Assembly: GCA_951804945.1 (NCBI GenBank) | Contig: OX638149.1 | Coordinates: 83,328,001 to 83,392,000, forward strand | Direction of reading: 5' to 3' | From: Podarcis cretensis | Taxonomy: Eukaryota | DNA: 64,000 nt | In this document: positions 26,301-59,717 of the stretch, one piece after another | Numbering within the stretch: position 1 is the stretch's first letter | Layout of the letters: every line of letters starts with the position of its first letter | Translations under genes and position numbers: made by a program | The notes under the pieces: generated by a model | Databases searched by the model: none | What the model was told of the DNA's origin: nothing | The model's input: the letters and a program-made list of their open reading frames with translations, nothing else

Positions 26301-29300
26301 TTTGGGGTGACCCAATGCAAAGATCCTGAGGATCCATGTGGATCCATGCTTTTTAACCACGTTTTTGCACCATTGCAGCCCCAGGCAACAGTGGGTGCGT
26401 GATTTTGGGGGGGCAGGCTGTAGCCATGGACATGCTATGTGATCTGGTGGTGAATTTGGGGTGACCCAATGCAAAAATCCTGAGGATCCATGTGGACCTA
26501 TGCTTTGTAACCACATTTTAAGTGGGGAGCGAAGGAAAAACAAATAAGGGACATGAGAGGGGTGTGCAGAGAAGCAGCTGGCTAAGAATGCAGGAGAGGG
26601 ATTTAACGGGAGGGAGGAAAGAAAGGCAAAAGTTTCCCCCNNNNNNNNNNNNNNNNNNNNNNNNNNNNNNNNNNNNNNNNNNNNNNNNNNNNNNNNNNNN
26701 NNNNNNNNNNNNNNNNNNNNNNNNNNNNNNNNNNNNNNNNNNNNNNNNNNNNNNNNNNNNNNNNNNNNNNNNNNNNNNNNNNNNNNNNNNNNNNNNNNNN
26801 NNNNNNNNNNNNNNNNNNGCACAGAAGCACAGAGAGGAATTCCCCTCTGCTTGCCTGGAGGGAAGGGGCTTTCCCTGCTCTTTGTTCCGTTTCAGCAAAC
26901 ACAGCAACGAAACGGAGGTGGGTGGGCAGTAAGACCCTGCGGCAGAATGCAGGAAAGCATCCACTTCCTCTTTTCAGTTTTCCCTTCTCCGTGAAGGGCC
27001 GCGATTTGATTTTTGCCTGATTTTTCGGCTCCAGGGACCACACATTCGCTCTATAACACGCACAGACATTTCCCCTTCCTTTTTAGGAGAAAAAATCTGC
27101 GTGTTATAGAGGGAAAAATACGGTAATCGATTTTGTTATTAATACCAGGATCACCACCGTTCTTTCATTACTGTTGCTGTGGGCTTGGAGCCGAGTCTGC
27201 ATATTCCAGTCAAATCATGAGGAAAGATTGCTTGTTCTATCAGGGATACAAACTGGGAAAAGTTTGGGGTCAAGCCAAGTGTTTGCAGACACTCCTCTTG
27301 TATAAGATGAGTCGTTTTGCCTGACTCTTGTTGAGATGAAGCAGTAGGCCCTCTCTCATCCTTTGCACTGAAACGTTAATGTCAACAATGTTGCTTTTGC
27401 ACAGGGACTGCACAGTGCCAGTATTCCTGGCATCCTTGCTCTTGACTTGTGTCCTTCTGACACCAACAAGATCCTCACAGGTATGTTAAGACTTCTGTTT
27501 CAGTTCCTTTCCTGAGTAAAATGTTAGGACAGTTTGAGCCATGGGGTCCTTTGCTCTCTTCAAAAGCCACCTCTTCTCCTTTGGTTCCATGCTTAGGTAT
27601 GGGCAGATCAACCTATTTTCATTCCGGGTTACTTTTGCTTGTGGTTGATCTTGGGTCTACCCTGTCTGGGGTTTTGTAGATTAAAATGAAACTACAAAAA
27701 CATTTCAGATATTATATACATTTGTCCTGCAAAATACTCATTTCTGTATGCTTTCCAATGCATTTCTCCCTAAAAATACTCATTTTTCTGTGAATTTTGT
27801 TTTTGCAATGCATGAGCCCCAAGACAATATGTGCTGAAGGAGTGTAGGGTGCTCTCCTTCACTGGGCCTTTGTGGTCTCTTTGTTTTCCAGGTGGAGCTG
27901 ATAAGAATGTTGTTGTCTTTGACAAGACCTCAGAGCAGATCCTGGCGACACTGAAAGGTCACACCAAGAAGGTCACCAGTGTAGTCTTCCATCCTTCCCA
28001 GGTAAAGACTGTTGTTTGTTGCCTGCCCCATTCCCTCCACCCCACGCCCCTTATATTTATTAAAATATTTAATATAACTTTAGTGTGTTGATGAATTTCC
28101 TCTGCAGTTGCCTGAAACAATTGTATGATCTCCCTTGAGGTCCCCTTATAGATAGAGAATGCACTCCATAGGTCCTCTTGAGCTGATGATTAAGGACACA
28201 ACTGTTCTGAATTCAGTAAACAAAGCTCTTGTTTCAGCCTAACTCTTCGAGCTTTATTTGCTCTCCCCTGCAGGAACTGGTGTTCTCGGCTTCGCCAGAT
28301 GCTACTATCCGGATCTGGTCAGTCCCCAGTGTTTCATGTGTGCAGGTTGTGCGTGCCCATGAGAGTGCCGTGACAGGGCTGAGTCTCCATGCCACAGGCG
28401 ATTACCTACTGAGCTCCTCTGATGACCAGGTGAGATCGAAACCAGAGGTGGTCAGGCCCAGATTGTGTTAACTGCAAAGCTCTTTATGTTACATGACATC
28501 TGCAAAATGTGAAGCTGCACTTGTATATTTGCTTATTAGCTTTATTTTAAACATTTCTAACTCATTTTTTAACATAACAATTCTTCCAAAGTGGTTCACA
28601 CTTTAGAGATAACAATTAATAAAACAATCTAGTTCACAATGAAAAGATACAAACATTGACATTTTTTAAAAAATCCAAAACATAAAACAGTAAGGATTAG
28701 TTAAAGAAAGTTTTCCAGAAGAAACATTTTGCCATATACAAACCCTCCACCTTTCCTCTCTTTCAGTATTGGGCTTTCTCTGACATCCAGACAGGTCGTG
28801 TTCTCACCAAGGTCACAGATGAAACTTCTGGCTGTGGTAGGGGCTCTGCATTTGGTATTTTGGTGAAACTTGCTTGGGAGAGGGGAGAGTCTGCATGTTT
28901 AGTGTGGTCTGGTTTGGCCATAATGTTAAACCGTAGTTTAGTGTTCTGAGAACAAGCATAGCTTTCCTCCAGCCTTGTTCACGCCCCCTCCAGTACAGCC
29001 TCAAGGAGGAATCCAAAAATTGCTGCTTCTAGTTTTTGTGTAACCACAGCTTGCAGTGTTGGCTGAACCTGGACAAACTGAGTTGTCACGACTGTGGTTA
29101 ATGGAAACAAGTTAATATCAAGTAATAGTTTATTTGCTTATTTCAGCTGAGCTTATTTAAGATTAATCACAGTTTAGCATGTTGCACAAACTCTAAACTG
29201 TGGTTAATCTAAACCAGAAGTAGCAGCTTCTAGTCTCCTTATGATTGCACTGGGGAAGAAGGGAGATGAGCCTTGTGCGGAGGGCTAGGCTCATTCTCAT

Positions 29301-33144: not shown

Positions 33145-36100
33145 CTAGAGTTTTGTCACTCTGCTTCTCTTTTTCCAGAGTACGATCACAACAACAAACA
33201 AGATTACACCCACTAAAGGCAGTGCCACCAAGCATATCAGGGCCAGATCTCCACTGGAGCTCATGTCTGTGGAAAAGAAAAGAGGCTTGCACTTATTTGG
33301 CAAGATTTATGTACAACTTAATAAAAAAAGGAATCTTAAGTGGTTTCCATAAAGTGGTATAGATAATTTAAAAATCGCAATTAAAACTCTAAAAACAGTA
33401 ACCATAATAAAAGCAGTAGATTTTTAAAACATACATGATAAAATTACAAGTTCTGAGTAAGCTTGCTCAAACAAAAACATTTTTAGCAGACATCATAAGC
33501 AGTACAATGAAGGGTCTGCCCAATATCAATAGGCAATAAGCACTAGAGAACAGAACATAGGAAGCTGCCATACATAAAGACCGACCATTGGTCCATCCAA
33601 CTCCGTATTGTCTACATTGACTGGCTGCAGTTCTCCAGGGATGCTCTCCCAACCCTACCTGGAGATGCTAGGGTTTGAACCCAGAACCTTCTGCATGCAA
33701 ACAAGCTCTGCTACTGAGCTAGGTCCTTCCCCGGCAAGTACTGCTACATGAAAAAATGTCATGCCAAGAGCAGAATGAACACTATGTGGCACTTGTAAGG
33801 GTGATAGTTACAGATCAAAGCTGGCACATTTGGGGTATGGCAGTCCTTTGCACCTCCTGAAACATTTGTGCCATCCATGACTTCCCTAGCCAAGGACCCA
33901 TGGTATGTTCTATTGGGACAAAGCTAGTAGAGTATACTCTGAATAAAACCACATCTGTGAGACATAGTTTATTATGTGCATGTTCTCAAGAGCTGCCGTG
34001 CTCACGGTAGGGTGCTCACCTGAGCTGCTGTTGCTGCAGCTTGTCAGGAGAAAGCAGCATGGTGACAGCAAATGGTGTGAGTGCACTTTGCTCTTGCCCC
34101 ATGCCCCACTGATAAGCCATGGTGACACTAGTGATGGGAGGGCAGATAAATGCCACGTGCCCTGCCGAGCAGTACTACTCACGAGCTAAAAAGTTGTGAT
34201 ATTGTTAGGAGGACATTGGTAGTCATGTTTATGACTTGTGACGCCCCCCCTCCCCCAAGTTTTAGTTGGCTGCTTCAGGCATAAATCCATACAGAGTTTG
34301 TATCTTACAAAGGACTATATATAAGATGACTGAAATTTAGTGTTGATGGTGAAACTATGTTAATACCTGTTCAAAAATATACAGCATTTTCATCATTTCA
34401 ACTCACTCATTGGTCCCAACCACTGGTGCCAACCACCAATTACCTTTCTTCCATTTGGCTTGTTTATCATGAGTCTGGCTGCTTTCTTGAAAGATCACAC
34501 CTCCATAAGTGCTTACTAGGTCCAAGGATTCTGTCCCATTGCCTGTCTTCAAAAACCGACGACTTCCTAAAAAGGGAGTTGGAGAAAGAAACCAGGTATA
34601 AAGAAACCAGTAGGCCACCTTGTGCCATATACAATTTTGAAGGTAAGAAGGAAAAGGAGCACAGCATTGATCATATTGTTAGAGCTGGAAGCTTGTAGGA
34701 GGGCTATGCCCTAGAAACCCATTTATACACCCAATGACTAGAGACAGATACAACCCTTTATGGAAAAAAAAGTATTTGCATTCTGAATGCTTTACCCCAG
34801 TAAAGAACCATAGCCAGACCCCTACACATCAGGACTGACGTTTTATTGGGGGGGGGGGGTTGCTGAGCCCCAGCATCACATATCAGCAGGCCAGCACTGC
34901 TAAGTGGGAAGAGATGGATCTTCATTTGAGGTTAGGAGTCAGAGCACCTGGTTGTTCGAGTGTCCTTGTATATGGGCTGTTAGAATTGGTGGTATGTGCC
35001 AGCAGCCTAGTTTCAAGGTTTGTGAAGAGAGGCAATGTGCTGTTAAAAATAGCACATAAGAGCCACTTGAACAGGGAGTGTGTTTATCAGGTACCTATTC
35101 ATTCATACTTTGTCTCTAGTTGCAGCTCATCAGCTCTTAGTGCTCTGCATTTATGCCCCCAATTCCAAGTTCAGTACCAAGATCTATTTTTGTTTACTAG
35201 TCATGGGCAGTAAGTGCCATTTGTGCATGCTGGAAATACTGGTGGCAGCCTATCTGGATTCAAATAAGCCTTTTACGGTATGACAGCAAAGCCATTTGGA
35301 CTTACTTGCAGCCACTGGCATTTGACACGTGTTCCTGCAGGGCTGCAGGTGAGAGGGGTGGCAAACAGACAGACTGCAGAAGAGGTACACCTAGGAAAGA
35401 CATTGCATTAGATAAGCTTGCTAGCAGAGGAGTCAACCCAAGTCGTCCAAGATATTTTAACAAAATCCTCATGGTCATTGACGTAAACATTTACAAAGTA
35501 CATTATCTCCTTACAGTTAAAGCATAATTCTAAATGTGCATTAATGGGAGTGGGAGGGGAACCTCTGGCCCACGGACCTAATCCTCCTAAGCTTGCCAAG
35601 CCTCCTAGTTTTGCCCCACTGCCATGCCCACCTGCCGCTCACCTGACAAGTGAGGGACATGTAAAACATGCTGCAAAGGAACATTAAGAGTGTTCTCCTG
35701 ACAGTTCCTTTGCCAGCATGGCTTGCATTCAAGTAGAATTAAATTCAGCACCATTTCAATTTGGCACCTAATGCAAGCCATGCTGCCTAGGGTCAGATCC
35801 ACTCAGGGACTCTTGACTGCAGCTTACAGGGGGATCAGATATCTACCCAGAGCAAGATAGCTTGCATTTTGAGATAAATTTAAACAGCTGAATTCAGCAT
35901 TCATCCTACTTCTGCTCATGTGCCACAGAGCACCTGACTGAAGCTCATGGACCACTTAAGGTCTGCAGACCACAATTTCGGAGCCCTTACTCGAGCTCAG
36001 CTGCAGTAGGAATTCTGTCTCTTACCAATCCATCCAGCACCATGTAATTGGCAGAATCCACAAATGTAAATGTAGCAATGGTGAAACGCTGGTAATGGTC

Positions 36101-39100
36101 TGGAAACTGCAGCTGAGACGTGGCAGGCCCCATAGGAACCATCTGGGTTCTGTAGTTATCGCCTTCAAATGGGCATCTAGGGAAAAGAGGCATTGCCATT
36201 TGAGCAGAGAACAGTAGGTGGCAATCCATAGAGAGAAACCAGCAGAATTCCTCCTTCCTACTTAACTCACCCATCTGTCAGAATTGGCCACTGCAGCTTC
36301 TCAAGGGGGTTAGGGGTCGGAGTAGCCCAGCATTCATGCAGAACCAGAACCAAGGACGGGTCCATTCTCTGCAGGACGCGAACCTCCACATACACAGGGT
36401 CTCTCAGTATCTTCACCACAGGATAGTCTGCATCCGCGTAGTAGGAGCTGTAACTGTAGTCTGGGTACAAGAGGCAAAGCAAAAGTTAGCACCTATAAGG
36501 GACTTCAGATGGAGCACCGTTGGAACCAGAAGCTTTGGAAGCACACCTACCTGTAGCAATACGCAGTTCAAACCGGAGAGGCCCCATCTGGATAACCGGA
36601 GCAGGTGTGGGAGGAAAGAAGACTTCAACCTGAACTGGCAAGAAGTCAGTAGCATTGTAGATGCAGCGAGTATTGAGGCTGCATATGGAAGACAGGACAG
36701 CGGAATGATGCATAGTCTTGCCATGTTCAGTAGCTTTGTCACATACCTGAAGTTCTCAAAAGATTCTTACATTTTCCTCGCCAGTTAGGCAGTACATCTT
36801 TTTTGATGTATATATCCCTGTTAACACCCCTTTCAAACAATACTGGATGTGACTTAAATTACTGTCTTCCAAAAGCACTGTTGATTGAAACCACACTTAA
36901 AAAACCACAATTTTCCTCCACATGTCTCATTTTTGAAGCAAGATTACTCACTTGAGCACCTGGAATGATTCTGCTTATGCACCTGAAAAGTAGTTTGCAA
37001 CTAACAGCTGTTACCCTACGGGAAAATCCAAATTACAGTCGTACCTTGGAACCCAAACGTCCGACGCAGCTTCCGATTGGCTACAGGAGCTTCCTGCAGC
37101 CAACTGGAAACCGCGCCTTGGTTTCCAAACATTTTGGAAGTCGAACGGACTTCAAGAACAGATACCACTGTACTTCAGAAGACTGCTATTCAAGCTTAGC
37201 AGTACTGGGAACAGTAGGCCTGCCCTGATTAGGACCAGCATGATGCCTCTTAGACATAGTATAGAGAGCAACCACCACCTCAGTAATGCGTGGGAAAGAT
37301 CAACTTACATGAAGGTGCTGTCCCGGGTAATAAAACCATCTGGCCCCCTTAAGATTTCAACGCCCGAAACCAACTGGTTTTCATATATCAGTCTGCCACC
37401 AGTCATCTAGAAAGGAACAGCAGCACATGTATAATTCTTTTTATCAAGCTTCAAGGTCCAGATGAAGGGACACTCACCTAAGATGCATCCTCACCTGAAT
37501 CGTCGTACCACAGTGTGTGAGAGGGAAGTGGAAGACCAAGAAAGACTCCGTTTTCCTGACAGGGTCACATCTTCCTTGGGCATAGGACAGTTTGACACTG
37601 TCAAGGACGATGGGGTAGTCCAACATATCCCTGGAGACAACCAGAATGAAGTGGCCATCTCGAAGGCATTGGACAGTGACTGCAAAGCACAAACATAACA
37701 CAAGAGTCACAAGCTGGAATTTGCCATCTTTTGCAGAACCTGAAACTCTTGTGTTTCAAAAGAAATATGAGCTTTCTGTCTTCTCCTTGCATAAATCTGG
37801 GGCAGGCTCTATTCGGATTGAGGGGAGGACTTCATTTTTCAGCTGCCCTAAAATGTCAGGAGTCAAGTTCTCTATTTGCTACTAAGTCACACAATTCCTA
37901 TTAGGAAATGATCACAGGCCTTGGTTTCTCCATATGAATCAATATACAATTGACACTGCCAGTAGAGGAAGAATGGGTTTCCTGGGACAGAGAGAGCCCT
38001 AACCGTGACAGCTCTAGATACTGTGAACCTGCAGCATGAGCCCAGGTTCACAGGTTGCACTATAGTCATATTAAGCTGTCCACTGAATTGCAACATCACA
38101 TTTCCCCAGACGATGGACATGCAATGGTACACAATTTGTTTTCAGAATTTTATACCTTCAGACATCGCTTTATACACCAGCTTGTTAAAGTTATACACAC
38201 AGCAGTGTTACAATTGCACCACTGCCCACTGAAAACTTTTAAAAAAATGGTCCTTCAAGGAAAAAAACAAAACCAGCAGGTACAGGAGACAAGAAAGGGG
38301 AAAGAACAATAAAAATATTCTTCAAATCCCTTCCCTCAGGATATGGTTTCCACATCCTGCCATGCCTATGTGTGGAAGGTACTGTTTTATGTTTTTCTGA
38401 GATGGACGATGGCTTTCTATGTTTGGGAAACAAGAGGAGGGGTAGAATCTGGAATTTGGAGGCAACTCTCCCTCTGTCTATCCGGCTGTTTTTGGCCCTG
38501 GTGAGATACTTCTCAGAGGGTTGGTGGTTCTCTGGTGGGGTAACCACACACAATTTTTGAAAATGTGGTTTTGGCAAAATGGGTAAAAAACCCCACATGC
38601 TGTTCAATTAAAAAAAAACAAAAAAAAACCCCCACACGTTTTGGCCACTGTGAAACATGCTTAAATGTTTGTTTGGTAGAGGTCTGTTGTTGCACAATTT
38701 CACAGACAAAATATTTCTTTATAAAATATCTGCATGCATGCCCCAAATGACCTGAGATTTCTAGAGCTTCCAGAGAATGAATGAATCTTTATCTGCATCA
38801 GCCACCAGCCATAGCAATAAAACACACAATATGATATACAAAGAGAGCAGGAAGTAGAAACAGAGGGAACCCCACCCCACAGCACAAATGAATCCCTTCA
38901 AGCAGAGTTTAGAACCCTGAAGAGCCTGGGACGGGAAGGTAACTCAAAGTAACCCCAGCTAGCATGGTATAGAAGCTGTTTCTACCCCACTTAATAAGGA
39001 CTAATTTAGATGTTCTTATTGTGCAGTCACAATGATTTACACTCATGATGCTACCGGAGCAGTCACATGCAGCCCAGCTTTCAATACTATTTGTGCCAAA

Positions 39101-42100
39101 CAAAAATGTTTGGGGGGGGGTCATACTGCTTCATTTGCAATCATTGCATGCCCTGTAAATTCCTGTTGAAATCCCGGGTCTCTCTTCATACCATAAATGT
39201 TATGAGTTTTGTTGTTGCTTCATAGGCCCCTCCAGACAGCAATAATGTGGTAACGTCAGGGAAGCACCACAAAGCAACATGAAACCATCACTAGTGCACT
39301 ATTGTGTCAAGAACATGGTACAAAATACACCCGTAATAAAACACTAGCCTGGAGGAGCCTTTGAGCAGTACTATACAGTGGTACCTCTGGATGCGAATGG
39401 GATCCGTTCCGGAGCCCCATTCGCATCCAGAAGCGAGCGCAACCCGCGTCCGCAGGTGCACGGGTCGCTGCTTCCGCGCATGTGCGTGACGTCATTTTGA
39501 CCGCATGCGCGAGCGGCGAAGCCTGGAAGTAACACACTCCATTACTTTTGGGTCACTGCAGCACACAACCCGAAAATACTTATCCCGAAGCTACTTCAAC
39601 CCGAGGTATGACTGTATAGTATCCTGGTTCGTGCTGCTTTGAACTGTGCTGGATACATATTCATCCTGCTAGCCTCTGGATTCTCAGCAGTAGCCAGCAC
39701 AGGACAGAATCCCAGTGTGGCTTTTAGTGTCAGGTGTATTGAAGTCAGCATGGCTGGGAGTTCATCTGTAGGAGTTTTTAAACCATGATACTGGGGGGGA
39801 GTAGTTAGAGCGCTTTGCTCCTCCCCCCAGCCAACCTGCTGTGCTACCTGGAGCTACGCCATGATTTCGCTTAGCATGACATCTAAATGCAGGCTCATGG
39901 TTTCTCTTGATCTAGAGAAGACACAAGCTGTAGCCAAGGTTTGTTCCTGGCTTGCTGCCTGTGGGTTGGGGCAAACCATGAGCTCTGGTTCAGTTGCAGT
40001 GCTAAGCCAAAAGCCATGATTTAGTAGCAGCAGAACAACTGGGGAAGGAGTGAATTGGCTGCATTTTTTTTTTTTTTTACTGTGAACAACTGCTTATACA
40101 TCCATGCTTAGCCATTGTTTGGTTTAGCATTATGTGCAAACCGGGCTATTATTTCCTTAGTACAAGCAATAAGTCCTCTTGGTAAATGAATCATTACCAT
40201 GGTTCCCAGCCTAATTTACCACCAGCACGCCAGACAATTAGCAGGAAACTAAAAGAAACAAAGTATTTTGCCCTTTACCTGTGTTGCCATAGTAACATGG
40301 AGTAGTTTGATCCCTCTCATCATAACAGCATCCAGTCTGGTAACATTCAGCTTGTCCTAGTGAACCTGCACAGGGAATCTTTCCAGATGAAACCTGGCAC
40401 TGCTCCTGGGTTAGAGGAGAACCTGGGAGGGCAAGAAAAGAGCTACAGCGTTATCTGGAGCATGATAAAGTATGCCCTATTAGGACATGTTAAGCCATGT
40501 TAAGCCAGATTTTAAAATAAGCAATAGCTTGATGTGAATGAGTAGTGGGTCAGTCCCCGCAATGAACAAGTGGGAAGCCAAGAACAATTTTTTGTGTGTC
40601 CAATGAATCATTAAAGGAAGTAGAATGCTCTTTTTAAAGGAACTAAAGGTCTCTCCTAGAATCTTATCAGATATTCAGAGGCAGAAATAGATCACATTCT
40701 TCATATACTTGAATCCATGCTTCATCCGTGCCATGTGGTATAAATATAATACAGTTTCCCTGACACTCCATATGCGGAATTAGTATGCAACACTAAATCA
40801 AGAAAGTCGATGATAAATCAATAGTCTGAACTTTATGCAGAACAACTATTACTGTATTCACACAATACCCATCAGTATTATTTACTTAGTTCAGAATGCT
40901 TCTGTTTTACTTAACAGCACAGATCACAGAGTTGTACTTAATGATAACATCGAAAAATGATCACATACCTATACTGTAGAGGCCAGAAGGGTGCATTAGG
41001 CCAGGATAGAGAGGAGGCACTGGTTGCACAAGGCCAGGCTGAGGCTGAGGCAGCGGGTGCAATTGGCCGGGCTGAGGCTGAGGCTGAGGCTGAGGCAGTG
41101 GGCGCACTTGGCCGGGCTGAGGCTGAGGCTGAGGCTGAGGCAGCGGGTGCACTAGGCTGGGCTGAGGCTGAGGCTGAGGCAGCGGGTGCACTTGGCCGGG
41201 CTGAGGCTGAGGCAGCGGGTGCACTAGGCCGGGCTGAGGCTGAGGCAGCGGGCGCACTTGGCCGGGCTGAGGCTGAGGCTGAGGCAGCGGGTGCACTTGG
41301 CCGGGCTGAGGCTGAGGCAGCGGGCGCACTAGGCCAGGCTGAGGCTGAGGCAGCGGGAGCACTAGGCCGGGCTGAGGCTGAGGTTGAGGCTGAGGCAGCG
41401 GGCGCACTAGGCCGGGCTGAGGCTGAGGCTGAGGCAGCGGGCGCACTAGGCCGGGCTGAGGTTGAGGCTGAGGGCGCACTAGGCCGGGCTGAGGCTGAGG
41501 CAGCGGGCGCACTTGGCCGGGCTGAGGCTGAGGCTGAGGCAGCGGGTGCACTTGGCCGGGCTGAGGCTGAGGCAGCGGGCGCACTAGGCCAGGCTGAGGC
41601 TGAGGCAGCGGGAGCACTAGGCCGGGCTGAGGCTGAGGTTGAGGCTGAGGCAGCGGGCGCACTAGGCCGGGCTGAGGCTGAGGCTGAGGCAGCGGGCGCA
41701 CTAGGCCGGGCTGAGGCTGAGGCTGAGGGCGCACTAGGCCGGGCTGAGGCTGAGGTTGAGGCAGGGGGCGCACTTGGCCAGGTGGAGGCAGCGGGCGCAC
41801 TAGGCCGGGCTGAGGTAGTGGGTGCACTTGGCCAGGCTGAGGCTGAGGCAGCGGGTGCACTTGGCCGGGCTGAGGCTGAGGCAGCGGGTGCACTAGGCCG
41901 GGCTGAGGCTGAGGCAGGGGGCGCACTTGGCCGGGCTGAGGCTGAGGCAGGGGGCGCACTTGGCCGGGCTGAGGCTGAGGCTGAGGCAGCGGGTGCACTA
42001 GGCCGGGCTGAGGCTGAGGTTGAGGTAGTGGGTGCACTTGGCCGGGCTGAGGCAGCGGGTGCACTAGGCCGGGCTGAGGCTGAGGCTGAGGTAGTGGGTG

Positions 42101-45100
42101 CACTTGGCCGGGCTGAGGCCGAGGCTGAGGCAGTGGGTGCCCTTGGCCGGGCTGAGGCTGGGGGCGCACTAGGCCGGGCTGAGGCTGAGGCAGGGGGCGC
42201 ACTTGGCTGGGCTGAGGCTGAGGCAGCGGGTGCACTAGGCCGGGCTGAGGCTGAGGTAGTGGGTGCACTTGGCCGGGCTGAGGCTGAGGCAGCGGGTGCA
42301 CTTGGCCGGGCTGAGGCTGAGGCAGGGGGCGCACTAGGCCGGGCTGAGGCTGAGGCTGAGGTAGTGGGTGCACTTGGCCGGGCTGAGGCTGAGGCTGAGG
42401 CTGAGGCAGCGGGTGCACTTGGCCGGGCTGAGGCTGAGGCAGGGGGCGCACTTGGCCGGGCTGGGGCTGGGGCTGGGGCTGGGGCTGGGGCTGTGGCCAT
42501 GGGTGCACTTGGCCAGGCAGCGGGCGCACTTGGCCGGGCTGAGGCTGAGGCAGCGGGCGCACTAGGCCGGGCTGAGGCTGAGGCAGTGGGCGCACTTGGC
42601 CGGGCTGAGGCTGAGGCAGCGGGTGCACTTGGCCGGGCTGAGGCTGAGGTAGTGGGTGCACTTGGCCGGGCTGAGGCTGAGGCAGCGGGTGCACTTGGCC
42701 GGGCTGAGGCTGAGGCAGGGGGCGCACTAGGCCGGGCTGAGGCTGAGGCTGAGGTAGTGGGTGCACTTGGCCGGGCTGAGGCTGAGGCTGAGGCTGAGGC
42801 AGCGGGTGCACTTGGCCGGGCTGAGGCTGAGGCAGGGGGCGCACTTGGCCGGGCTGAGGCAGCGGGCGCACTGGGACGGGCTGAGGCTGAGGCTGAGGCA
42901 GCGGGTGCACTTGGCCGGGCTGGGGCTGGGGCTGGGGCTGGGGCTGGGGCTGTGGCCATGGGTGCACTTGGCCAGGCAGCGGGCGCACTTGGCCGGGCTG
43001 AGGCTGAGGCAGCGGGCGCACTAGGCCGGGCTGAGGCTGAGGCAGTGGGCGCACTTGGCCGGGCTGAGGCAACGGGCGCACTTCACCAGGCTGAGGCTGT
43101 GGCCATGGGTGCACTAGACCAGGCTGAGGCTGTACTTTGCTGGGCTGAGGCTGAGGCTGAGGCTGAGGCTGAGGCAGCGGGCGCACTAGGCTGGGCTGAG
43201 GCTGAGGCAGCGGGCGCACTAGGCCGGGCTGAGGCTGAGGCAGCGGGCGCACTAGGCCGGACTGAGGCTGAGGCAGCGGGCGCACTAGGCCGGGCTGAGG
43301 CTGAGGCAGCGGGTGCACTTGGCCGGGCTGAGGCTGAGGCTGAGGCTGAGGCAGCGGGTGCACTTGGCCAGGATGAGGCTGAGGCAGCGGGTGCACTTGG
43401 CTGGGCTGAGGCTGAGGCTGAGGCTGAGGCAGCGGGTGCACTTGGCCGGGCTGAGGCTGAGGCAGCGGGCGCACTAGGCCGGGCTGAGGCTGAGGCAGTG
43501 GGTGCACTAGGCCGGGCTGAGGCTGAGGCAGTGGGCGCACTTGGCCAGGCTGAGGTTGAGGGAGCGGGCGCACTTGGCCAGGCTGAGGCTGAGGCAGCGG
43601 GTGCACTAGGCCGGGCTGAGGCTGAGGCAGCGGGCGCACTAGGCCGGGCTGAGGCTGAGGCAGGGGGCGCACTAGGCCGGGCTGAGGCTGAGGCAGGGGG
43701 CGCACTTGGCCAGGCTGAGGTTGAGGCAGGGGGCGCACTAGGCCGGGCTGAGGCTGAGGCTGAGGCAGCGGGTGCACTTGGCCAGGATGAGGCTGAGGCA
43801 GCGGGTGCACTTGGCCGGGCTGAGGCTGAGGCAGCGGGCGCACTAGGCCGGGCTGAGGCTGAGGCAGGGGGCGCACTTGGCCAGGCTGAGGTTGAGGCAG
43901 GGGGCGCACTAGGCCGGGCTGAGGCTGAGGCTGAGGCAGCGGGTGCACTTGGCCGGGCTGAGGCTGAGGCAGCGGGTGCACTTGGCCGGGCTGAGGCTGA
44001 GGCTGAGGCAGCGGGTGCACTTGGCCGGGCTGAGGCTGAGGCTGAGGCTGAGGCAGTGGGTGCACTTGGCCGGGCTGAGGCTGAGGCAGCGGGAGCACTA
44101 GGCCGGGCTGAGGCTGAGGCAGTGGGTGCACTTGGCCGGGCTGAGGCAGCGGGCGCACTAGGCCGGGCTGAGGCTGAGGTAGTGGGTGCACTTGGCCGGG
44201 CTGAGGCTGAAGCAGCGGGCGCACTAGGCCGGGCTGAGGCTGAGGCTGAGGCAGTGGGTGCACTTGGCCAGGCTGAGGCTGAGGCAGCGGGCGCACTAAG
44301 CCGGGCTGAGGCTGAGGCAGTGGGCGCACTTCACCAGGCTGAGGCTGTGGCCATGGGTGCACTTGGCCAGGCTGAGGCAGCGGGCGCACTTGGCCGGGCT
44401 GAGGCTGAGGCAGGGGGCGCACTTGGCCAGGCTGAGGCAGCGGGTGCACTAGACCAGGCTGAGGCTGTGGGCGCACTTGGCCGGGCTGAGGCCATGGGTG
44501 CACTATGCCAGGCTGGGGCTGTGGTCGTACTATGCCAGGCTGGGGCTCTGGGTGTATCAGGCCAGGCACTGGATGCTCTAAACCAGGCTGGGGCTTAGGC
44601 TGGGGCTGCGGGCGCAACTGGCCAGGCTGAGGCTGTGGGCGCACTATGCCAGGCTGGGGCTCTGGGCGTATTAGGCCAGGCACTGGACGCTCTCGGTCAG
44701 GCTGGGGCTGAGGTTGTGGGTGCACCTGGCTGGGCCTAGGCTGAGGCAGCGGGAACTCTAGGCCAGGCTGGGAATGAGGCAGAGGGCGCACCACACCAGG
44801 CTGGGGCTGAGGCACATGACGCATGTTGTCCTCTGGTGCTGGGACATATTCTTGTGGCTTGGGGCATATTATGTTGACATCATGGGAGACAACAACTCTT
44901 CTGTTGCTTGTTAGTTCTTCTATCCGGACTTTCAAGTTATTGCTGTTATCCTGCAAGATACATTGAAACAGAATGTTATAGAGTAGTTGCAAGTTTCTGT
45001 CACATTGATGAGTCAGGATGGATATAGAATACTGAGGTTTTAGAGTCAAATACCAATGTACCTGTTACAAGGCATTATCATAGTCTTGCTATGACATATG

Positions 45101-48100
45101 AATCTTGTTTTGATAATAAATATAATAAATACCGACCAAGCTAGTGGACTGGATTGCTAGGTACCAGGTGAGAAGCATCCTCCCAAAACATCTAAAAGCT
45201 CATCTTAAATGTCTATACAACAGAGCTAATTTTCCTGACAGAGGATTTCTGCTGCAGTAGTTGGCCAAGATCGTGGGCAGGATACAACTAAGCGGTGTGC
45301 ATGGCATGAGGTCCAATTACTCAACAGGACTTTCCCTGCTCTCCTTCCCCTCGTGGACCTTGTTTCCCTTGGGCTTCACTGAGTTCTACACCCTGGTTTT
45401 AGGCTGTTCAGTTCTCTACTGCACATGTTGCTATACTTTGGAAGACAATTCTACCCTTTCTTATACTTGGACTTTCTGCATAGCCAGCTATTTGCAAAAT
45501 CACTAAAGCAAAAATCAGAAGTGACTAGGAAACCTGGTGAACCTGTGCCTCTCAAATGTTGCTAGGTTCCAGAGGTAGCTATAAATGTAAAAACTAAACC
45601 CAGCCAGCATGTCTGATGGAAATTGGCAGTCGGGTAACAGGCTCCCTACCCCCAAGTTAGGCCTATTACCTGCCTTACAGCAAGGTTTCCTGAAATTACG
45701 TAATTAGAAGAGTGGGCGACTCAAATCCTTGCACAGTCAAGAAGTTCATGGGCTGACCCTGGGCCAATCACTCCCTCTCAACCTAAAGTACCTTACAGGA
45801 CTGTTGGAAGAACAGAAGGAGCTGGGAAGATCAGCAGCCCCTTTCACATGTGCATCACATGTGAAGGGGACTCATACAGAACAGGGCTACTTCTCTGCCT
45901 TTGGAGTCCATCTGCCCAAGCCGAACATCTGCAAGCAAAAGCTTACATTGCTCTTTTCCCGAGTCCTAGAACCCTAAAGAACCTTTTAACGAGGGTGAAA
46001 GAGAGCGCAAAATATGGTCTGAAGCTCAACATCAAAAAAAACGAAGATCATGGCCACTGGTCCCATCACCTCCTGGCGAATAGAAGGGGAAGAAATGGAG
46101 GCAGTGAGAGATTTTACTTTCCTGGGCTCCATGATCACGGCAGATGGTGACAGCAGTCACGAAATTAAAAGACGCCTGCTCCTTGGGAGAAAGGCAATGG
46201 CAAACCTAGACAGTGTCTTAAAAAGCAGAGACATCACCCTGCCAACAAAGGTCCATATTGTTAAAGCCATGGTTTTCCCAGTAGTGATGTATGGAAGTGA
46301 GAGCTGTACCATCAAGAAGGCTGATCGCCAAATAATTGATGCTTTTGAACTATGGTGCTGGAGGAGACTCTTGAGAGTCCCATGGACTGCAAGAAGATCA
46401 AACCTCTCCATTCTTAAGGAAATCAGCCCTGAGTGCTCACTGGAAGGACAGATCGTGAAGCTGAGACTCCAATACTTTGGCCACCTCATGAGAAGAGAAG
46501 ACTCCCTGGAAAAGACCCTGATGTTGGGAAAGATGGAGGGCACAAGGAGAAGGGGACAACAGAGGACGAGATGGTTGGACAGTGTTCTCGAAGCTACAAA
46601 CATGAGTCTGACCAAATTGCGGGAGGCAGTGGAAGACAGGAGTGCCTGGCGTGCTCTGGTCCATGGGGTCACGAAGAGTTGGACACAACTAAATGACTAA
46701 ACAACAACAGAACCCTAAACATGCTCTCAGAAGGGCTGCTTATACAATTCCCCTGAGGTCTTAAGGGCACAATCCAGATGTCCATATAAAATTATATTGC
46801 GTTATTCAGGATGACAATGTTGGCCATGCAGTATAGGGTTTCCAGGGAAGCCTGCAACACAAAATCCAGAAGAGCCTCACCTTATTTAGTACGTGGCAGC
46901 CACCGTAGCCAGCAGAGAAAGCAATAGCCCCATTAGATGTGATCCAGTGGCGGCAGATTGAGCAATTTGAAACTTCAAAGGCTATCCCAAACTCATCTGT
47001 TGATGAGAGGTTAATGCGTTAGCCACGGAGAGATGCAACAAGAAAACTTATTTGCATTGGTTGAGACTTCTAAAGTTCTTCAGATGTGTGTCCCTTATTA
47101 TCAGTTAGTGCCTGAACCACATAGAAAGAGTGTGAACTTTTCACTTGCTTTGAAATCCAATAATAAGGCCAATTCAAGAGCTATGCCTCCAACAACAGGT
47201 GCTAGACCAGGCACCCCCAAACTCAGCCCTCCAGCTTTTTTGGGACTGCAACTCCCATCATCCCTAGCTAACAGAACCAGTGGTCAGGGATGATGGGAAC
47301 TGTAGTTCCCAAACATTTGGATGGCAGGTTCGGGGATGCCTGTGCTAGACCAACATGCTCATTACTGCTGCAATTATTTCAGTGATTATTCCCCATAGGA
47401 CCAAGGAAAAACATTTTGCAATAGTCAGTTAATATGCCTGTTAACTTGAGAGGGGGCTCTGCTGGAATCCATATGTGCCAACAATTGTAGGCTTAATCAG
47501 ATGCCAGACTAAGGCCACATTCACACCATACATTTAAAGCAGAATCATACTGCTTCCCATCCTCCAAAGACGACTAGGAACTGTAATTAAGTGTGCTGAG
47601 AGTTGTTTGGAGACCCTTCCAGACCTACAGTTCACAGAGTAGTTGATCAATCCCTCTTCACAGAGAACTCTGGAAATTTTAACTCTGGGGGGACTAGGGG
47701 GTACCTTAACAACTCTACATGCCCTTAAACTACAGCTCCCAGGATTCTTTGGGGGAAGAAGCCATGGCTGTTTAAAGTGGCATGCTGCTTCTTTAAATGG
47801 GGAGTGCAGATAGAGCCTAAATTATACTGTGAAGTCTCCTAATTTTTTTAACAAGTAGCACAATTGTCTTAAAACAAGCTCTTTAATAAAGCCTAGTTTG
47901 GGGAGAATGTTTGCAGTTCTTTGAGTTTCTATTCTCGCCACCACACCCTCCAAGCCTTGGCTCTAACCACACGTACAGGAACTGCAACTCTCCCTGTGGC
48001 CTCTCCAGTTTCACAGCTTTGAGCATTTTCTTCAACTAAACTAAGCCTTCTCATTCGAGATATGGATATCCAAAACCATGCAAGAGAAAAGCTGCCATTG

Positions 48101-49123
48101 CCACAAAGCTGTCGCAGCCTACCACAAAGGAGGTGGCTGGCAAGGAGCATCACTCCCAACACAAGGAGTGCGGGGTATTCTGAAGTGCTCCACTGAAGCA
48201 ACACAGATTTAACTACAGCCGAGCAAGGCAGCTGCTGCAGCATTAAAAGAAAAGAAAAAAAAGAGTACTGTGGGATTTAATGGGAGCTAAAGGCCTGCAG
48301 CTTCTATAGCTTGCCAGAAATCTTTTTTCTTGGTCATTTAGACGACCAGAATAAGAGGACAACTACATACCTCTGATTCCCTGTGACCTCTCCTTTGAGA
48401 GGTTACTGAATCCCCTCTCCCTGGCCAGTACTAACAAAGAACATACAGAGACCTGCTGTTTGGCATCCACCTTCCAATGAACCATTCTGCCATAGGTAAG
48501 CATAAAGCAGGGGTCCTACCACTCCAACCTTTTAAGACCCAGAGACACATTTGAGAAGCCAAGGAACTGTTGTGGGCACCACAAAAAAATGCCCATTTCA
48601 CAGAGAAAAGACTGGCAACGCTGGAGAAACTCTCCCCAAAGTGGAAGACACCTACACACACCTCAAAACAAATCAAACAAAAAGGCAGGCAACCATTCCA
48701 CCAGTTAGCCCTTCCAAACCCTCACAATTAAAACATACAAAAATAAATTGAGAGGGGCAGGAGACTTGGCAGACACCAAGGGAGGCACAGTGGGATCCCA
48801 CTGAGGAGCCCAGATAACGTTTCAAGGAGTTCCCTTATATTTCATGCCCCAACAAACACACACACCTGACCCACCCCCCTTCTTTCTAACAGACCAGACT
48901 TATTATTTCTTCAAGAGGAAAGAGAGCCTGCCTTACCCACAACTTTAAAGCGGACATCTCGGCCTGGGCTAGGAAACACAAGCAGCTGCATGCTGTACTC
49001 GCCACAGTTGTAATGATATGGGGAGGGTAAGGAGCCCACCCTCCAAACGTCACCTTGCCCTTGGCACAGCCCCAGAATCAACAAGACTGCTAACCCCCCC
49101 AAATCTCTGAAGCCCCAGTCCAT
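33145..49123 (-). CDS. ZP1: Zona pellucida glycoprotein 1, ~1836 aa; exons 49123-48937, 46996-46881, 44950-40969, 40422-40279, 37679-37495, 37406-37309, 36678-36551, 36460-36271, 36176-36026, 35390-35306, 34566-34444, 33266-33145
   Basis: 12 GT-AG exons total 5511 nt in frame. Domains in order: signal peptide; ZP-N1 ([18 protein letters not shown]...AGYGGCHV); P/Q repeat; trefoil ([10 protein letters not shown]...[18 protein letters not shown]); ZP module ([37 protein letters not shown]); furin site RSRR; TM helix [27 protein letters not shown]. Adjacent to PRPF19 as in mammals. Confidence 0.95.
37036..37170. mobile_element. Short Tc1/mariner-type MITE in ZP1 intron 6
   Basis: TA-CAGTCGTACC ... 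GATACCACTG-TA. Confidence 0.65.
39376..39614. mobile_element. Tc1/mariner-type MITE in ZP1 intron 4
   Basis: TA-CAGTGGTACCTC ... GAGGTATGACTG-TA with a CpG-rich interior. Confidence 0.75.
41030..44815 (-). repeat. Coding minisatellite in ZP1 exon 3: ~33-nt unit with a variable (CAGCCT)n tract, encoding PG(Q/L)V(H/R)PLP(QP)n
   Basis: Read directly. The frame stays open across the array, and the unit-length variation I checked comes in multiples of 3. Confidence 0.97.
45979..46708 (+). mobile_element. RTE-BovB LINE, 5'-truncated, in ZP1 intron 2
   Basis: ORF 46050-46700 with BovB-type C-terminus ([41 protein letters not shown]). (CAA)n tail; TSD AGAACCCTAAA at 45968-45978 and 46709-46719. Confidence 0.95.
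47208..47342. mobile_element. hAT MITE (palindromic)
   Basis: CAGGCACCCCCAAAC ... GTTCGGGGATGCCTG with 8-bp TSD TGCTAGAC. Confidence 0.85.
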
Positions 49124-52669: not shown

Positions 52670-54020
52670 ATCTAGTCCAACCCCCGCAATGCAGGAATCA
52701 CAGCTCTTAGCTTTCTTTGAAACAATGAAAACTGTATAAATGCAAAACAGCATCCATATAATGGTACCAAAATGACAGCCCTGCTGCCCCATTTAATCTG
52801 CAGAAAAGATAAGGTGGAGGCTGGGGAGAAAACCTGTTGCCAATGACTTGCTTGCATTTTAAACAGAAGATGTCATCATTATGGGTGCTTTTAGTGTGGG
52901 ACTTAATCTTGCATATTCTCACTCTTTGATTTGTTTTCTCTTTATCCACCATACAGTATCGTCTTTCCTATATCCCATAATTCACTGACACTCTTCAGCA
53001 ACACTGCTCTGCATTCCATCTTTACTTTTTCCAGTTGCTAATGCTTGCCTAAGATTCTAGTCATCCCTAGGGGAAGCCATTTGTTTGTATGTCTTTGAAA
53101 AGACTGTGTGATCTCTGCAAACTGAATTAAATCTGAAAATGGTATGCCTTCGGAGGAGGAACCCTGCATCTTATTAAGACTGAAGCATAATTCATCACTG
53201 TTCCATCAGAATCAAATTCCCTTGCAAGCTTGTTCATCACTGGCATGCTAATCACCCACACTGGGAATATTTTGTAGCTGCACATGGCAAAATTGGCACA
53301 TATACAGTCAAAGCATTTGACTGTGCATACAAAATGTATACGCTTGTGACTTCGGACTTAGAGAGGCTGCATGTTGTTATGAATATGAATAGGATCACCA
53401 AAGGTGGAATGTTAAAAAATGGGGTGTTGCTCTTTGCCACTCACTAGAGGAGGAGGGTTTCATGGGGTTTGTTTATCCTTGTTCTTCCTTTATCTACTAT
53501 AGTTAAGGCTCCAGGTAATTAACAGTCTAGTCTTGGTAGCCTGCAGCAGATATTTGCACATAGATAGAGGCAGTTCATTGTACAGTGCCAACACATGCGG
53601 ACAGTAGCTACTCTTTGCCAAGTCCTTTTCGATACTGCCTTGGCCGTTTGTCCCTCCTCCTTGTGTGCAACAGGTAGCCACAGATTTTTTCTGGCTTTTG
53701 AAAATTATCAGGCTTTTCTGGTATTGCTAAGCTCCTAAAAATGGTCATAAATGGTTCTATTGAGCAAGGCTGAGCTGGAAATCGTTTTTGGGTGGGTTGA
53801 CTGAAACAAGTAGTGCTTAATTGGGAAGAGAATGTGCCAGAGCCTTGTTAGATATTTTTTTTTTTTATTCAGCAGAGGTGACCCATCTTTCTGAACCAGT
53901 AGGCACAACTGGAATTTAGAGAAAGTGCTATGGGCACCAGTTACAAAAATGCAAGCAAACCTCCACTTCCCATCAGTGGCGAGGAGAGTGGAAAGGTACC
54001 TACATCAGCCACTACCGTGC

Positions 54021-54024
<4 letters not shown>

Positions 54025-54070
<46 letters not shown>
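54025..54070. repeat. (AG)n microsatellite
   Basis: Read directly from the sequence. Confidence 0.95.
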
Positions 54071-54074
<4 letters not shown>

Positions 54075-55515
54075 AAGCTCTTTGAACCTGACCTCTGTTC
54101 TGAACATCCCAGCATCCAATGAAATGTGCACATTTAAGGGGAAGATGAGTCAGTGCAAACAATCTCTTGCGCCCTGTCGATTTTTGAGGGGATTACTGAG
54201 GCATTATGTAATTTTGATTTTTTTTTTCATTAAAGATTTTCTTTATTTACAAAAGTGTTTGCAATGTCTCTCTCTCGTATTTTTTCCCCCATGTAACATT
54301 TTTACAAATCATTTTCATTTGTTGAGACATTAGGAAGAAAAGGGGGAAAGAGGTGGAGGGGGGAAGAGATGGATAAGAGTGGGGTCAGGTGGTGATGTTT
54401 CTATTTTACTTACCGTATTTTTCGCTCTATAGGATGCAAGTATGTATGCAAATGTAGAGACACACTTCAGACAGAAAGAGAAACCTCAGCTTTGCTGGTT
54501 TCTTTGTATACAGCACAATTTTGAGGAGGCTGCCACAATGGGAGCATGACAAATGGTTTTTCTGTCACCAACACTTTAGTTGTAGCTAAAGGAACCTGTC
54601 AGTTATGCTAGTGTGCCCACATACAGGCCTAGGGACCAATCCAAACCCATGATGTACTTAGCTGTCCAATTCAGCCAGCTTCTTATAGTTAGGATTGCTT
54701 TGCATGGCTCCATATATTCTCCATGGACCATCTTTGGTGTTACGAGCAGCAGAGGGGGCCCTTTTGGTAGTTTCACTACCCTCAGAAGTTTGGGGAGTGG
54801 CAGCCCACTCTTGTAGGCTACTTGGACAGATTGCCCACCTGCCAATCACATGACAAAACTTCAAACGAAATAGTCTGGAGTGCGCTCCCAGTTCTTCCTT
54901 CCTTTCTTTGCAGTGGTAGCTTAGCTTGAAACTACCCTTGCAGAAGAAAAATTATTCCCTCCACCCTTTGTAGCCCAGCTGGAATTCAAGACAGAGATGC
55001 GAAGGAAGATTTGGGAGCACACTGTTAAGTGCTGTGCCCATTGTTCCTTTGTAGTCAAAAGTAAGTGCTTTTTTGAATCTGGTGCCTTTTCCTGTCACCT
55101 TGATCTTGTCAATCACCTTTTGTGTTTTGTAGTTCTGGTTTATTTTATTCTAATGGGCTAGCTTTGCAGAGTTTGAAATGTCCCCTTCACCCAAGTGCTT
55201 AAGATCAGACCGAACGGGGGGGGGGGGGGGAATTATTGTCCCCATTTGACAGATGAGCAAGTGTAGCAAAGGGGCCTCAATCACCCCCCCCCCAAGAAGC
55301 ATGAGACAGGCAAAAGGACTGGATGCAGTTTGCAGAGGCCTCTAACACTGTCACAGGCTTTTGGCCACGCAATTGTCTTTCTGATGAGTGCTCTCGAAAT
55401 ACCATGTCACAGGGATATTCTCACTCCGGCGATCTTCCGTGCGTGGGCTGATTCATTGGATCAAGTCTGGAGAACGAGAATACGTCACCTGAGCTGGCTT
55501 TCCTTCCTTCCGCTA

Positions 55516-58500: not shown

Positions 58501-59717
58501 TCTTTGTAATATTTGTGGATTTTTATGTTGGATTGTTAAATTTTCTTCTGTTTTTCTTTGTAAAATTCAATAAAATATTATTAAAAAAAAACAATAAAAG
58601 CAACCTGGGCATGTGAGCAATGTGTGTCCCACAATGAGGGAAGAGAAGGACTGCACGATTGTAGGGAAGGTTCAGAAACAAATGGGAAAGTTGCATACAG
58701 ACGTGTGGGAAGAAGGAGAATGCAGTGAAGAGGTAAAGGAGAGGGGGGACTTCTCTTTATTCTTATAACTCAGGAAGTATTATAGGACTCTCTCATCCAG
58801 GTACTGATGAAGCCCCAGCCCACATAGGTTCATCTATGCATTAAGTACTCGCAGACCATCTACTGAGCCCACTAGTCCAGAGCAGGCCCACTGATGGGGT
58901 GGTGTGAAGCATCTGCCTCACCCTGCCTGCCCCACTGCTGGTGGAATGCCCCCCTGTGGCTTGTGAGAGGGAGGCATTATGGCATGTGGTGTTGCCATTC
59001 ATCTTCTCTGCCCCTGAGGCAGGAAAGACGTGGGGCAATGCCTTGAGGAATGTGCCGGCTCTCGCAGGGTTTGGCAGGTGGTGGTGGGGATGTTCTGACA
59101 ACAGTGGAAGTGGGGTGGGATGCAGCAGCGAGGGCAGCCCATTCCCATTTCACTACAAGTTGTGAAACAGGGGTGGGCTGGCACTGCGCTAGGCCATTCC
59201 TCATTGTAGTTAATCACCCGGGAGGGGAGAGAAAGCACAAATCAGTTTTCTTACCTGGTGGCAAGAAAAGGGCGCCCCGAACTTTGCCTTCTTTGATCTG
59301 GACACGTTCCACTCCATGGGCTGCGTACCATCTCTCCACAGTGCAAGTGGCCAGTGGTACATCGTTGGGTGAAGGAACTAATACCAAAGAGCCAAAGAGG
59401 CTGACCTGGACGCGGAAAGGGCTGCCTGTCACATTGCGTTTCATCAGCCTGTGGAACCTTTTCTCTGGCTTCAGGGAGGAGAAGAGGCCCATGGGCCAAA
59501 CACCTACATAGTCCCCGCCTAGAGCAGCCGCCTGCTTCACGTCCACCTCCCCAGACAGATTTGCCCGGAAGTGGGCTCTGGATTGAAACTTCTCTCCCTT
59601 GTCATCTGTAAGCAATGCATGCAGGGTTACCAGCTGGGAAGGGTCCAGGCCAGAGGCGCGAATCCACACGGGTGAGTCGGCTAGTGAGCTTTTTGGGGTG
59701 ACAGTGAGGCAGGCCAT
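55516..59717 (-). CDS. Type-I acyl-CoA thioesterase / BAAT-ACNAT family alpha/beta hydrolase, 420 aa; exons 59717-59255, 57328-57126, 56112-55516
   Basis: Exons of 463+203+597 = 1263 nt join in frame. Motifs [18 protein letters not shown], nucleophile GLSKG, Asp in SESDQ and His in [11 protein letters not shown]. The three-coding-exon layout is typical of ACOT1-6/BAAT. Confidence 0.9.
57492..58590 (+). mobile_element. L1-clade LINE, 5'-truncated, in an intron of the ACOT-like gene
   Basis: Uninterrupted 257-aa ORF2 C-terminus with zinc knuckle CWKC-X8-H-X4-C. AATAAA and A-tail; 19-bp TSD ACAATAAAAGCAACCTGGG at 57473-57491 and 58591-58609. Confidence 0.92.

Follow-up and report, generated by a model that had tools for sequence, protein, structure and literature searches.

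ZP1 cross-links the filaments of the egg coat, and the length of the linker that follows its cross-linking domain, ZP-N1, limits the distance between those filaments. In ZP1 of birds, reptiles, and fish, a repeat rich in proline and glutamine (P/Q) is conserved between ZP-N1 and the trefoil domain (PMC6626044). In chicken ZP1 this "repeat domain" is a named domain that contains no cysteine and no N-glycosylation site (Okumura et al. 2015, PMC4475693). Far-western blotting and immunostaining revealed that the chicken domain is exposed at the filament's surface and that it is the only domain of ZP1 that binds ZP1; these data, the sole direct experiment on such a domain, suggest that it bundles ZP1-ZP3 fibrils noncovalently rather than acting as a passive spacer (PMC4475693). 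The human linker, of ~90 residues, is disordered and caps the distance between cross-linked filaments (bioRxiv 10.1101/2023.06.21.544075). Here we analyze a stretch of 64,000 nucleotides (nt) of the lizard Podarcis cretensis (assembly GCA_951804945.1, contig OX638149.1, positions 83,328,001 to 83,392,000 of the forward strand), referred to below as the window and numbered from its first letter. The window holds a predicted ZP1 gene whose third exon encodes a P/Q-rich array of ~109 units and 1,265 amino acids (aa).

We consider it fairly probable that this array is an expanded version of the sauropsid repeat domain, that it has grown as a variable number of tandem repeats (VNTR), and that it forms a non-globular arm for the spacing or bundling of filaments. 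An earlier note on the same DNA, made without database searches, had proposed a giant ZP1 with a P/Q spacer at this site; we report below how its claims compare with our data.

RESULTS

A P/Q repeat array fills most of exon 3

Exon 3 lies on the minus strand from 44950 to 40969, at the coordinates that the earlier note had correctly given; the plus strand of the same interval reads as Ala/Glu/Gly. The exon comprises 3,982 nt and translates as 1,327 codons with no stop. Its acceptor reads tatcttgcag/GATAAC at 44950 (slashes mark junctions), and its donor reads AGTATAG/gtatgt after 40969. It is entered in phase 0 from exon 2 (46996 to 46881), the end of which is AAT AAG/gtgagg, and it is left in phase 1 into exon 4 (40422 to 40279), which starts cccag/GT TCT. 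Translation of the minus strand and reading of the junctions therefore bear out the canonical splice sites, the frame match with exons 2 and 4, and the stop-free run that had been proposed for it.

The exon encodes the last ~30 aa of ZP-N1, including its fourth canonical cysteine, a lead-in of ~20 aa, the array, and a short tail. Its composition is 35.6% P, 23.1% Q, 11.2% L, 8.7% V, 8.0% G, 4.7% R, and 4.1% H, and the GC content reaches 72% in the repeat exon compared to ~45% in the background. The product of exon 3 alone would weigh 144 kDa and account for 72% of the 1,836 codons of the gene, with ~56 kDa contributed by the other exons, in agreement with the earlier estimate of about two thirds of a precursor of 190 to 200 kDa.

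The array proper spans 41003 to 44797 on the minus strand (exon residues 52 to 1316) and is built from units of the form G(Q/L)V(R/H)PLP(QP)n. When the protein was cut at P/G(S)xVxP, with the slash marking the cut, 108 to 109 units were obtained, which fits the ~100 or more that had been estimated. The modal length is 11 aa (57 units); the rest are 7, 9, 13, 15, 17, or 19 aa long, in steps of one QP dipeptide. There are 46 distinct unit sequences, the four commonest of which occur 14 (11 aa), 13 (11 aa), 12 (13 aa), and 10 (11 aa) times. The cores GQVHP, GLVRP, GQVRP, and GLVHP all fit a shared motif, PG(L/Q/V)(V/L)(R/H)P. At the nucleotide level, Tandem Repeats Finder reported over 41127-44467 either a period of 33 nt (98 copies) or one of 66 nt (score, 2996), with 73 to 77% matches between units. 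This core (44467-41127) is homogeneous, and the units are more degenerate toward the 5′ end (44797-44470). The array proper contains no Cys, no Asn, no Thr, 2 Lys, 1 Tyr, and 8 Asp plus Glu; hence it has no N-glycosylation site, and the earlier description of it as lacking cysteine, with almost no lysine and few acidic residues, was accurate.

Several blocks of the array have been duplicated internally. A recent duplication on the minus strand at 41221-41716 gives an exact match of 241 nt at an offset of 255 nt. Similar blocks are found at 42238-42856, 42448-43070, and 43665-43954, with matches of 226, 164, and 119 nt at offsets of 393, 459, and 171 nt, respectively.

The array is under coding-type constraint

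In the ZP1 frame, the array core has no stop codon over 1,254 codons. The other frames have between 2 and 220 stops, two of them just 2 and 5, and because the sequence is a 33-nt repeat, a stop-free frame is by itself weak evidence of coding. The lengths of the units are more telling: each of the 108 is divisible by 3 nt, and in 106 of them the departure from 33 nt is a multiple of 6. Single-base differences from the unit consensus comprise 177 synonymous and 125 non-synonymous changes, compared to a random expectation of 28% synonymous, and since the units are related by duplication, p-values computed from these counts would be inflated but their direction is clear. With two dimorphic codons set aside (CAA/CTA, giving Q/L, and CGC/CAC, giving R/H), the counts become 174 synonymous and 30 non-synonymous; the CGC/CAC dimorphism is a CpG transition. 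Among the 57 canonical units, positions 1 and 2 of the Pro codons are invariant, and the third base of Pro5 is G in 30, C in 13, A in 11, and T in 3. The array looks coding, with constraint of the coding type in the ZP1 frame. The excess of synonymous changes and the unbroken frame extend from end to end of the array, the 3′ two thirds included, which argues that the distal units are translated.

Exon 3 belongs to a predicted intact squamate ZP1

The exon map was built with Varanus ZP1 as the tblastn guide, after which each junction was read and domain searches were run exon by exon; the length of the protein is the sum of the exon lengths. The resulting gene has 12 exons on the minus strand between 49123 and 33145; every one is bounded by AG/GT sites, the phases agree throughout, and the lengths total 5,508 nt (1,836 codons, ~200 kDa). 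Judged from its sequence, it is an intact squamate ZP1, the cross-linker of the egg coat. The Pfam domains follow the order ZP-N1 (PF22821, exon 1 to the start of exon 3), trefoil (exon 4), ZP-N (exon 5), and ZP-C (exons 8 and 9).

Exon 1 (48937-49123) carries the start codon, the signal peptide, and the start of ZP-N1 (PF22821 positions 1 to 29) and ends at the donor GTG G/gtaagg. Exon 2 (46881-46996) encodes the middle of ZP-N1 (PF22821 positions 25 to 64; E = 8.8e-11, 42.6 bits against a cut-off of 28 bits), matches the chicken ZP1-N1 structure (PDB 6gf6, E = 5e-12), and contains an N-C-S-I-C motif that combines a sequon with the equivalent of Cys66. The start of exon 3 (40969-44950, 3,982 nt) supplies PF22821 positions 66 to 94. 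Exon 4 (40279-40422) encodes the trefoil (P-type) domain (PF00088, E = 7e-6, above its cut-off). The ZP-N part of the ZP module follows in exon 5 (37495-37679; PF23344, E = 1.2e-9), which is 87% identical to Varanus. Exon 6 (37309-37406), exon 7 (36551-36678, the interdomain linker region), and exon 10 (35306-35390, the end of ZP-C) were placed by tblastn with Varanus ZP1 and by their splice sites. ZP-C occupies exon 8 (36271-36460; PF00100, E = 1.2e-19) and continues in exon 9 (36026-36176; PF00100). A furin-type R-S-R-R site, aligned with RGRRF of Varanus and Pogona, crosses the junction between exons 10 and 11 and is followed in exon 11 (34444-34566) by a segment resembling an external hydrophobic patch. 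Exon 12 (33145-33266) encodes a transmembrane segment and a short tail and ends in the stop codon TAG. The site, the patch, and the transmembrane segment were read from the sequence and from alignment with Varanus and Pogona.

In chicken ZP1, Cys66, within A-N-C-S-I-C, forms the intermolecular cross-link (PMC6626044). The lizard S-N-C-S-I-C aligns with the chicken A-N-C66-S-I-C69, and the four canonical cysteines are also present. The cross-linking cysteine is thus conserved in lizard ZP1, in which the disulfide itself is predicted. The closest matches of the gene are all named ZP1, and the cross-linking cysteine and the repeat domain are both ZP1 traits; the gene is accordingly a putative ortholog of ZP1 rather than of ZP4. 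The ZP-N1 exons are 55 to 67% identical to those of Anolis carolinensis, and the non-repeat exons are 60 to 87% identical to those of Varanus. With the same Varanus guide, tblastn detected no second ZP1 copy within the 64-kb window. The split of PF22821 over three exons, the trefoil in exon 4, and the Cys66 equivalent uphold both the identity of the gene and the placement of the repeat between the cross-linking ZP-N1 and the trefoil, as the earlier note had them.

The repeat domain is shared with other sauropsids

A search with exon 3 returned only ZP1 of birds, turtles, and squamates, and the top matches carry a repeat at the same site. The unit is PGLVRPVPQPQ(PQ) in Hemicordylus and sea turtles and PGLVRP(L/P/V)QPQPQ in Varanus; in Liasis it is the 18-aa PGQVRPGQPGLVRPGESQ, with PGQVRP and PGLVRP cores, and in chicken it is 24 aa long and of the form PGVLRPG...GLVRPG. 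The core PGLVRP is common to turtles, snakes, Varanus, Hemicordylus, and chicken on units of 11, 13, 18, or 24 aa, depending on the lineage. A literature search found nothing specific on lizard or squamate ZP1 repeats. The PGxVxP core and the composition have been retained for over 250 million years, which shows that selection has acted on the domain itself rather than on how long it is.

The nearest relatives of the array are those of Varanus komodoensis, Hemicordylus capensis, and sea turtles, in which a nearly identical unit, PGLVRP(V/L)PQPQ(PQ)n, of 11 to 13 aa occupies the same position and is followed by the same trefoil and ZP module. They differ in having linkers of 694, 571, and 200 to 500 aa, respectively, compared to 1,297 aa here, and the Podarcis array has a marked Q/L and R/H dimorphism, with ~4% His. 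The chicken repeat domain likewise has the same position, no Cys, no N-glycosylation site, and a richness in P, Q, and G, and it shares the core PG(V/L)(L/V)RPG with the lizard array. However, its unit is 24 aa, the domain ~375 aa, the linker 448 aa, and the P+Q fraction ~0.3, whereas the lizard has an 11-aa unit, a 1,265-aa array, and a P+Q fraction of ~0.6. The chicken domain was reportedly also treated by Bausek et al. in 2000. Teleost ZPB/choriogenin H resembles lizard ZP1 in carrying P/Q-rich tandem repeats N-terminal to a trefoil and ZP module; we know of no ZP-N1 upstream of the repeat in these fish proteins. In human and mouse ZP1, too, a disordered spacer separates the trefoil from the disulfide-forming ZP-N1 and limits the spacing of cross-linked filaments, but it is of ~90 residues and has no tandem repeat (PMC6626044; bioRxiv 10.1101/2023.06.21.544075).

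The array is the longest found among annotated ZP1 proteins

The linker between ZP-N1 and the trefoil was measured, by means of anchor peptides derived from the window, in 126 sauropsid ZP1 proteins from the exon 3 search. These have a median linker of 393 aa (interquartile range, 320 to 434; maximum, 694), compared to 1,297 aa here (~71% of the precursor). The Podarcis linker is ~1.9 times as long as that of the runner-up and ~3.3 times the median; the longest of the others are those of Varanus (694 aa), Liasis (589 aa), and the first copy in Hemicordylus (571 aa). No squamate ZP1 longer than those of these three genera was found by a search on the trefoil and ZP module among proteins of 675 to 2,147 aa. 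When 1.84 billion representatives were searched exhaustively with phmmer, without any filter on length, no ZP protein proved to have a longer array.

That search, which used the first 1,190 residues of exon 3 as the query, returned long matches of 1,735 to 4,054 aa; these have no ZP-N1, trefoil, ZP-N, or ZP-C anchors and were set aside as unrelated low-complexity matches.

The predicted array is the longest ZP1 repeat domain in the collections searched; it takes a known feature to an extreme and is not a new architecture. The cross-squamate comparison of exon length proposed in the earlier note, run on annotated proteins, thus found such a length unmatched, and its statement that the mammalian linker is short and the bird linker more modest holds (~90 residues in human, bioRxiv 10.1101/2023.06.21.544075; 448 in chicken). 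Its claim of novelty was overstated: a P/Q repeat at this site had been described (PMC6626044), and squamate linkers of 530 to 694 aa are built on the same PGLVRP core.

Two annotated squamate relatives deserve comment in their own right. The Hemicordylus capensis "ZP1" (entry P0001, 1,628 aa) is a fusion that reads through from one ZP1 gene into its tandem neighbor; both genes contain a ZP-N1, a repeat, a trefoil, and a ZP module. The repeats of these paralogues measure ~571 and ~98 aa, so that a tandem duplication of ZP1 in a lizard comes with very different array lengths. Pogona ZP1 isoform X2 begins within its repeat, and several other squamate ZP1 models have no N terminus.

Copy number varies in steps of one unit

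ZP1 entries of the sea turtles Lepidochelys, Caretta, and Eretmochelys (P0002-P0020 and P0129-P0133) come from different assemblies or copies. Their lengths form a ladder of 761, 816, 827, 838, 849, 860, 871, 882, 893 ... 1,047 aa, with one 11-aa unit per step. Chicken ZP1 cDNAs differ by one 24-aa unit (PMC4475693). Because of the 11-aa ladder in turtles and the 24-aa polymorphism in chicken, the ZP1 repeat domain can be said to behave as a coding VNTR. In Podarcis, the array would have grown by unequal crossing-over or replication slippage, in 33-nt units and 6-nt QP steps; the exact internal duplications of up to 241 nt support expansion.

Other features of the window

Upstream of ZP1, on the minus strand at 55519-59855, lies a gene of the acyl-CoA thioesterase/BAAT family, with matches to PF04775 in 59217-59855 (E = 1.5e-43) and to PF08840 in 55519-56145 (E = 8e-56). 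A 154-bp tandem satellite occupies 25512-26519 (6.5 copies, 96% identity) near a run of N at 26641-26818 and may continue into that gap; the long open frames that run through it on the minus strand have no Pfam match. A short dinucleotide microsatellite at ~53950-54190, read as (SL)n in minus-strand open frames, is unremarkable.

DISCUSSION

If the whole of exon 3 is translated, the array may form a non-globular, proline-stiffened, and multivalent arm between the disulfide-forming ZP-N1 and the filament-forming module. By analogy with the model for the human linker of ~90 residues, such an arm would set the distance possible between two filaments cross-linked by ZP1. By analogy with the chicken repeat domain, its ~109 units could bundle ZP1-ZP3 fibrils through numerous weak homotypic interactions. 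At 0.31 to 0.36 nm per residue, the contour length of the arm would be ~0.40 to 0.47 μm, so that a disulfide-linked pair of ZP1 molecules could span up to ~0.9 μm, compared to ~0.07 μm for human ZP1.

Two other known repeat chemistries invite comparison with the array. In fish, hardening involves the cross-linking of ZPB to ZPC by transglutaminase (PMC9855834). Compared with that system, the lizard array is abundant in Gln (23%) but has just 2 Lys, and it could therefore serve transglutaminase only as a Gln donor. We know of no transglutaminase step or enzyme in squamate egg coats. Elastin- and resilin-like elastomers combine disordered Pro and Gly repeats with Lys or Tyr cross-links; the array has 36% P, 8% G, 2 Lys, and 1 Tyr, and no secondary structure was predicted for the repeats within the first 300 residues of exon 3. 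The functions that the earlier note had put forward (an elastomer-like tether, control of the mesh, or a supply of Gln donors for transglutaminase) are plausible proposals, but the chicken data favor self-association over a passive spacer.

Could the array be something other than a translated ZP1 domain of the length we read? The plus strand is open from 40957 to 44598 (1,213 codons), and the repeat might belong to a gene there for a protein rich in Ala, Glu, and Gly. This is hardly conceivable: that frame is the mirror image of a coding repeat, has 2 stops in the array core, and has neither flanking exons nor homologues, and every flanking ZP1 exon is on the minus strand, where its phase agrees with the P/Q frame. 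We rejected it as a gene, as an antisense mirror of the repeat. Much of the array might instead be spliced out through cryptic in-frame donors to exon 4, which would leave secreted ZP1 with a far shorter repeat. The Ensembl model of Varanus (P0308) does join a point within the repeat to the trefoil exon, and three phase-1 GT sites would keep the frame here (CTG/GTGAAG at 44334 and 43086, CTG/GTGTGG at 44796). These sites, however, match 4 of 7 consensus positions and have no GTRAG, and the natural donor TAG/GTATGT is good; throughout exon 3, no internal GT exceeds 4 of 7 positions or carries GTRAG, compared to scores of 4 to 6 for the true donors of the gene. The synonymous bias and perfect frame along the whole array would be expected only if its 3′ part is translated, and the NCBI models of Varanus, Hemicordylus, and snakes retain long arrays. 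We regard extensive splicing of this kind as improbable. An array expanded or collapsed in assembly, such that the figure of ~1,250 aa would correspond to no real allele, strikes us as a similarly poor prospect. It would draw on the build of the array (33-nt units over 3.8 kb, with internal repeats that match exactly for up to 241 nt), on the 178-N gap elsewhere in the window (26641-26818), and on the length polymorphism of such arrays in relatives; against it, exon 3 contains no N and no discontinuity, and the frame is kept throughout. The divergence of the units (73 to 77% matches, 46 distinct sequences) helps correct assembly, and a long-read assembly could resolve the array. In tandem arrays, collapse is a commoner assembly error than expansion, which would bias the length of the array toward underestimation.

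Several points weigh against our reading of the array as an expanded repeat domain that serves as a spacing or bundling arm, besides the shared descent of the units noted above. Splicing, translation, and array length are predicted here from the genomic sequence. The roles in self-association and spacing would be transferred from chicken and human proteins, the repeats or linkers of which differ in unit and length. AF2 (AlphaFold2), applied to the first 300 residues of exon 3, placed strands only in the ZP-N1 remnant and gave the repeats no secondary structure, with a predicted local distance difference test score (pLDDT) of ~50, which fits a composition of 36% Pro; this run on a single sequence is weak evidence. 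The status of the array as the longest known may owe something to imperfect annotation. Short squamate models (Anolis, 663 aa; Phrynosoma, 660 aa; Gekko, 646 aa) may hide equally long arrays, and Varanus komodoensis ZP1 has 1,227 aa in the NCBI model (P0018) but 614 aa in the Ensembl model (P0308). The two Varanus models are identical for 243 aa, after which that of Ensembl breaks off within the repeat, resumes at the trefoil exon, and drops ~580 aa. Because the two models differ, annotated lengths are unreliable and are best taken as lower bounds, and comparably long arrays may hide elsewhere.

A different kind of alternative accepts translation of the array and grants its extra length no tuned function: the array would be a drifting, tolerated coding VNTR, in which 300 or 1,300 residues work alike. 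We see this as a serious contender, if a less probable one than a spacing or bundling arm. The length ranges broadly, both from one sauropsid species to the next and inside single species (200 to 694 aa overall, and in turtles in 11-aa steps), the repeat unit itself differs between lineages (11, 13, 18, or 24 aa), and the lizard array has undergone recent internal duplications. Nothing in our data directly opposes neutral length; conservation of the core points to selection on the domain and not on how long it is. Adaptive length and neutral VNTR drift are, on these data, equally possible. A bolder proposal takes the expanded arm further, with copy number as a tuning knob for the mesh and mechanics of sauropsid egg coats and with selection, acting for instance on the size of the egg, its yolk load, its retention in the oviduct, or its penetration by sperm, having pushed the cross-linking arm of the lizard to the micrometer scale. 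On this view many squamate genomes may conceal arrays as large, because annotation pipelines often trim the repeat from gene models. We offer it as speculation and think it rather unlikely as a whole.

These results bear on how ZP1 is compared among reptiles. Squamate ZP1 models disagree by hundreds of residues at the repeat exon, and comparative studies based on annotation misjudge the domain. If exon 3 is fully translated, Podarcis would have the longest ZP1 arm recorded so far. Linker lengths of ~90 aa in human, ~450 aa in chicken, ~690 aa in Varanus, and ~1,300 aa in Podarcis would then form a natural series, which would serve to relate the length of the linker and the valency of its repeats to the porosity and strength of the egg coat.

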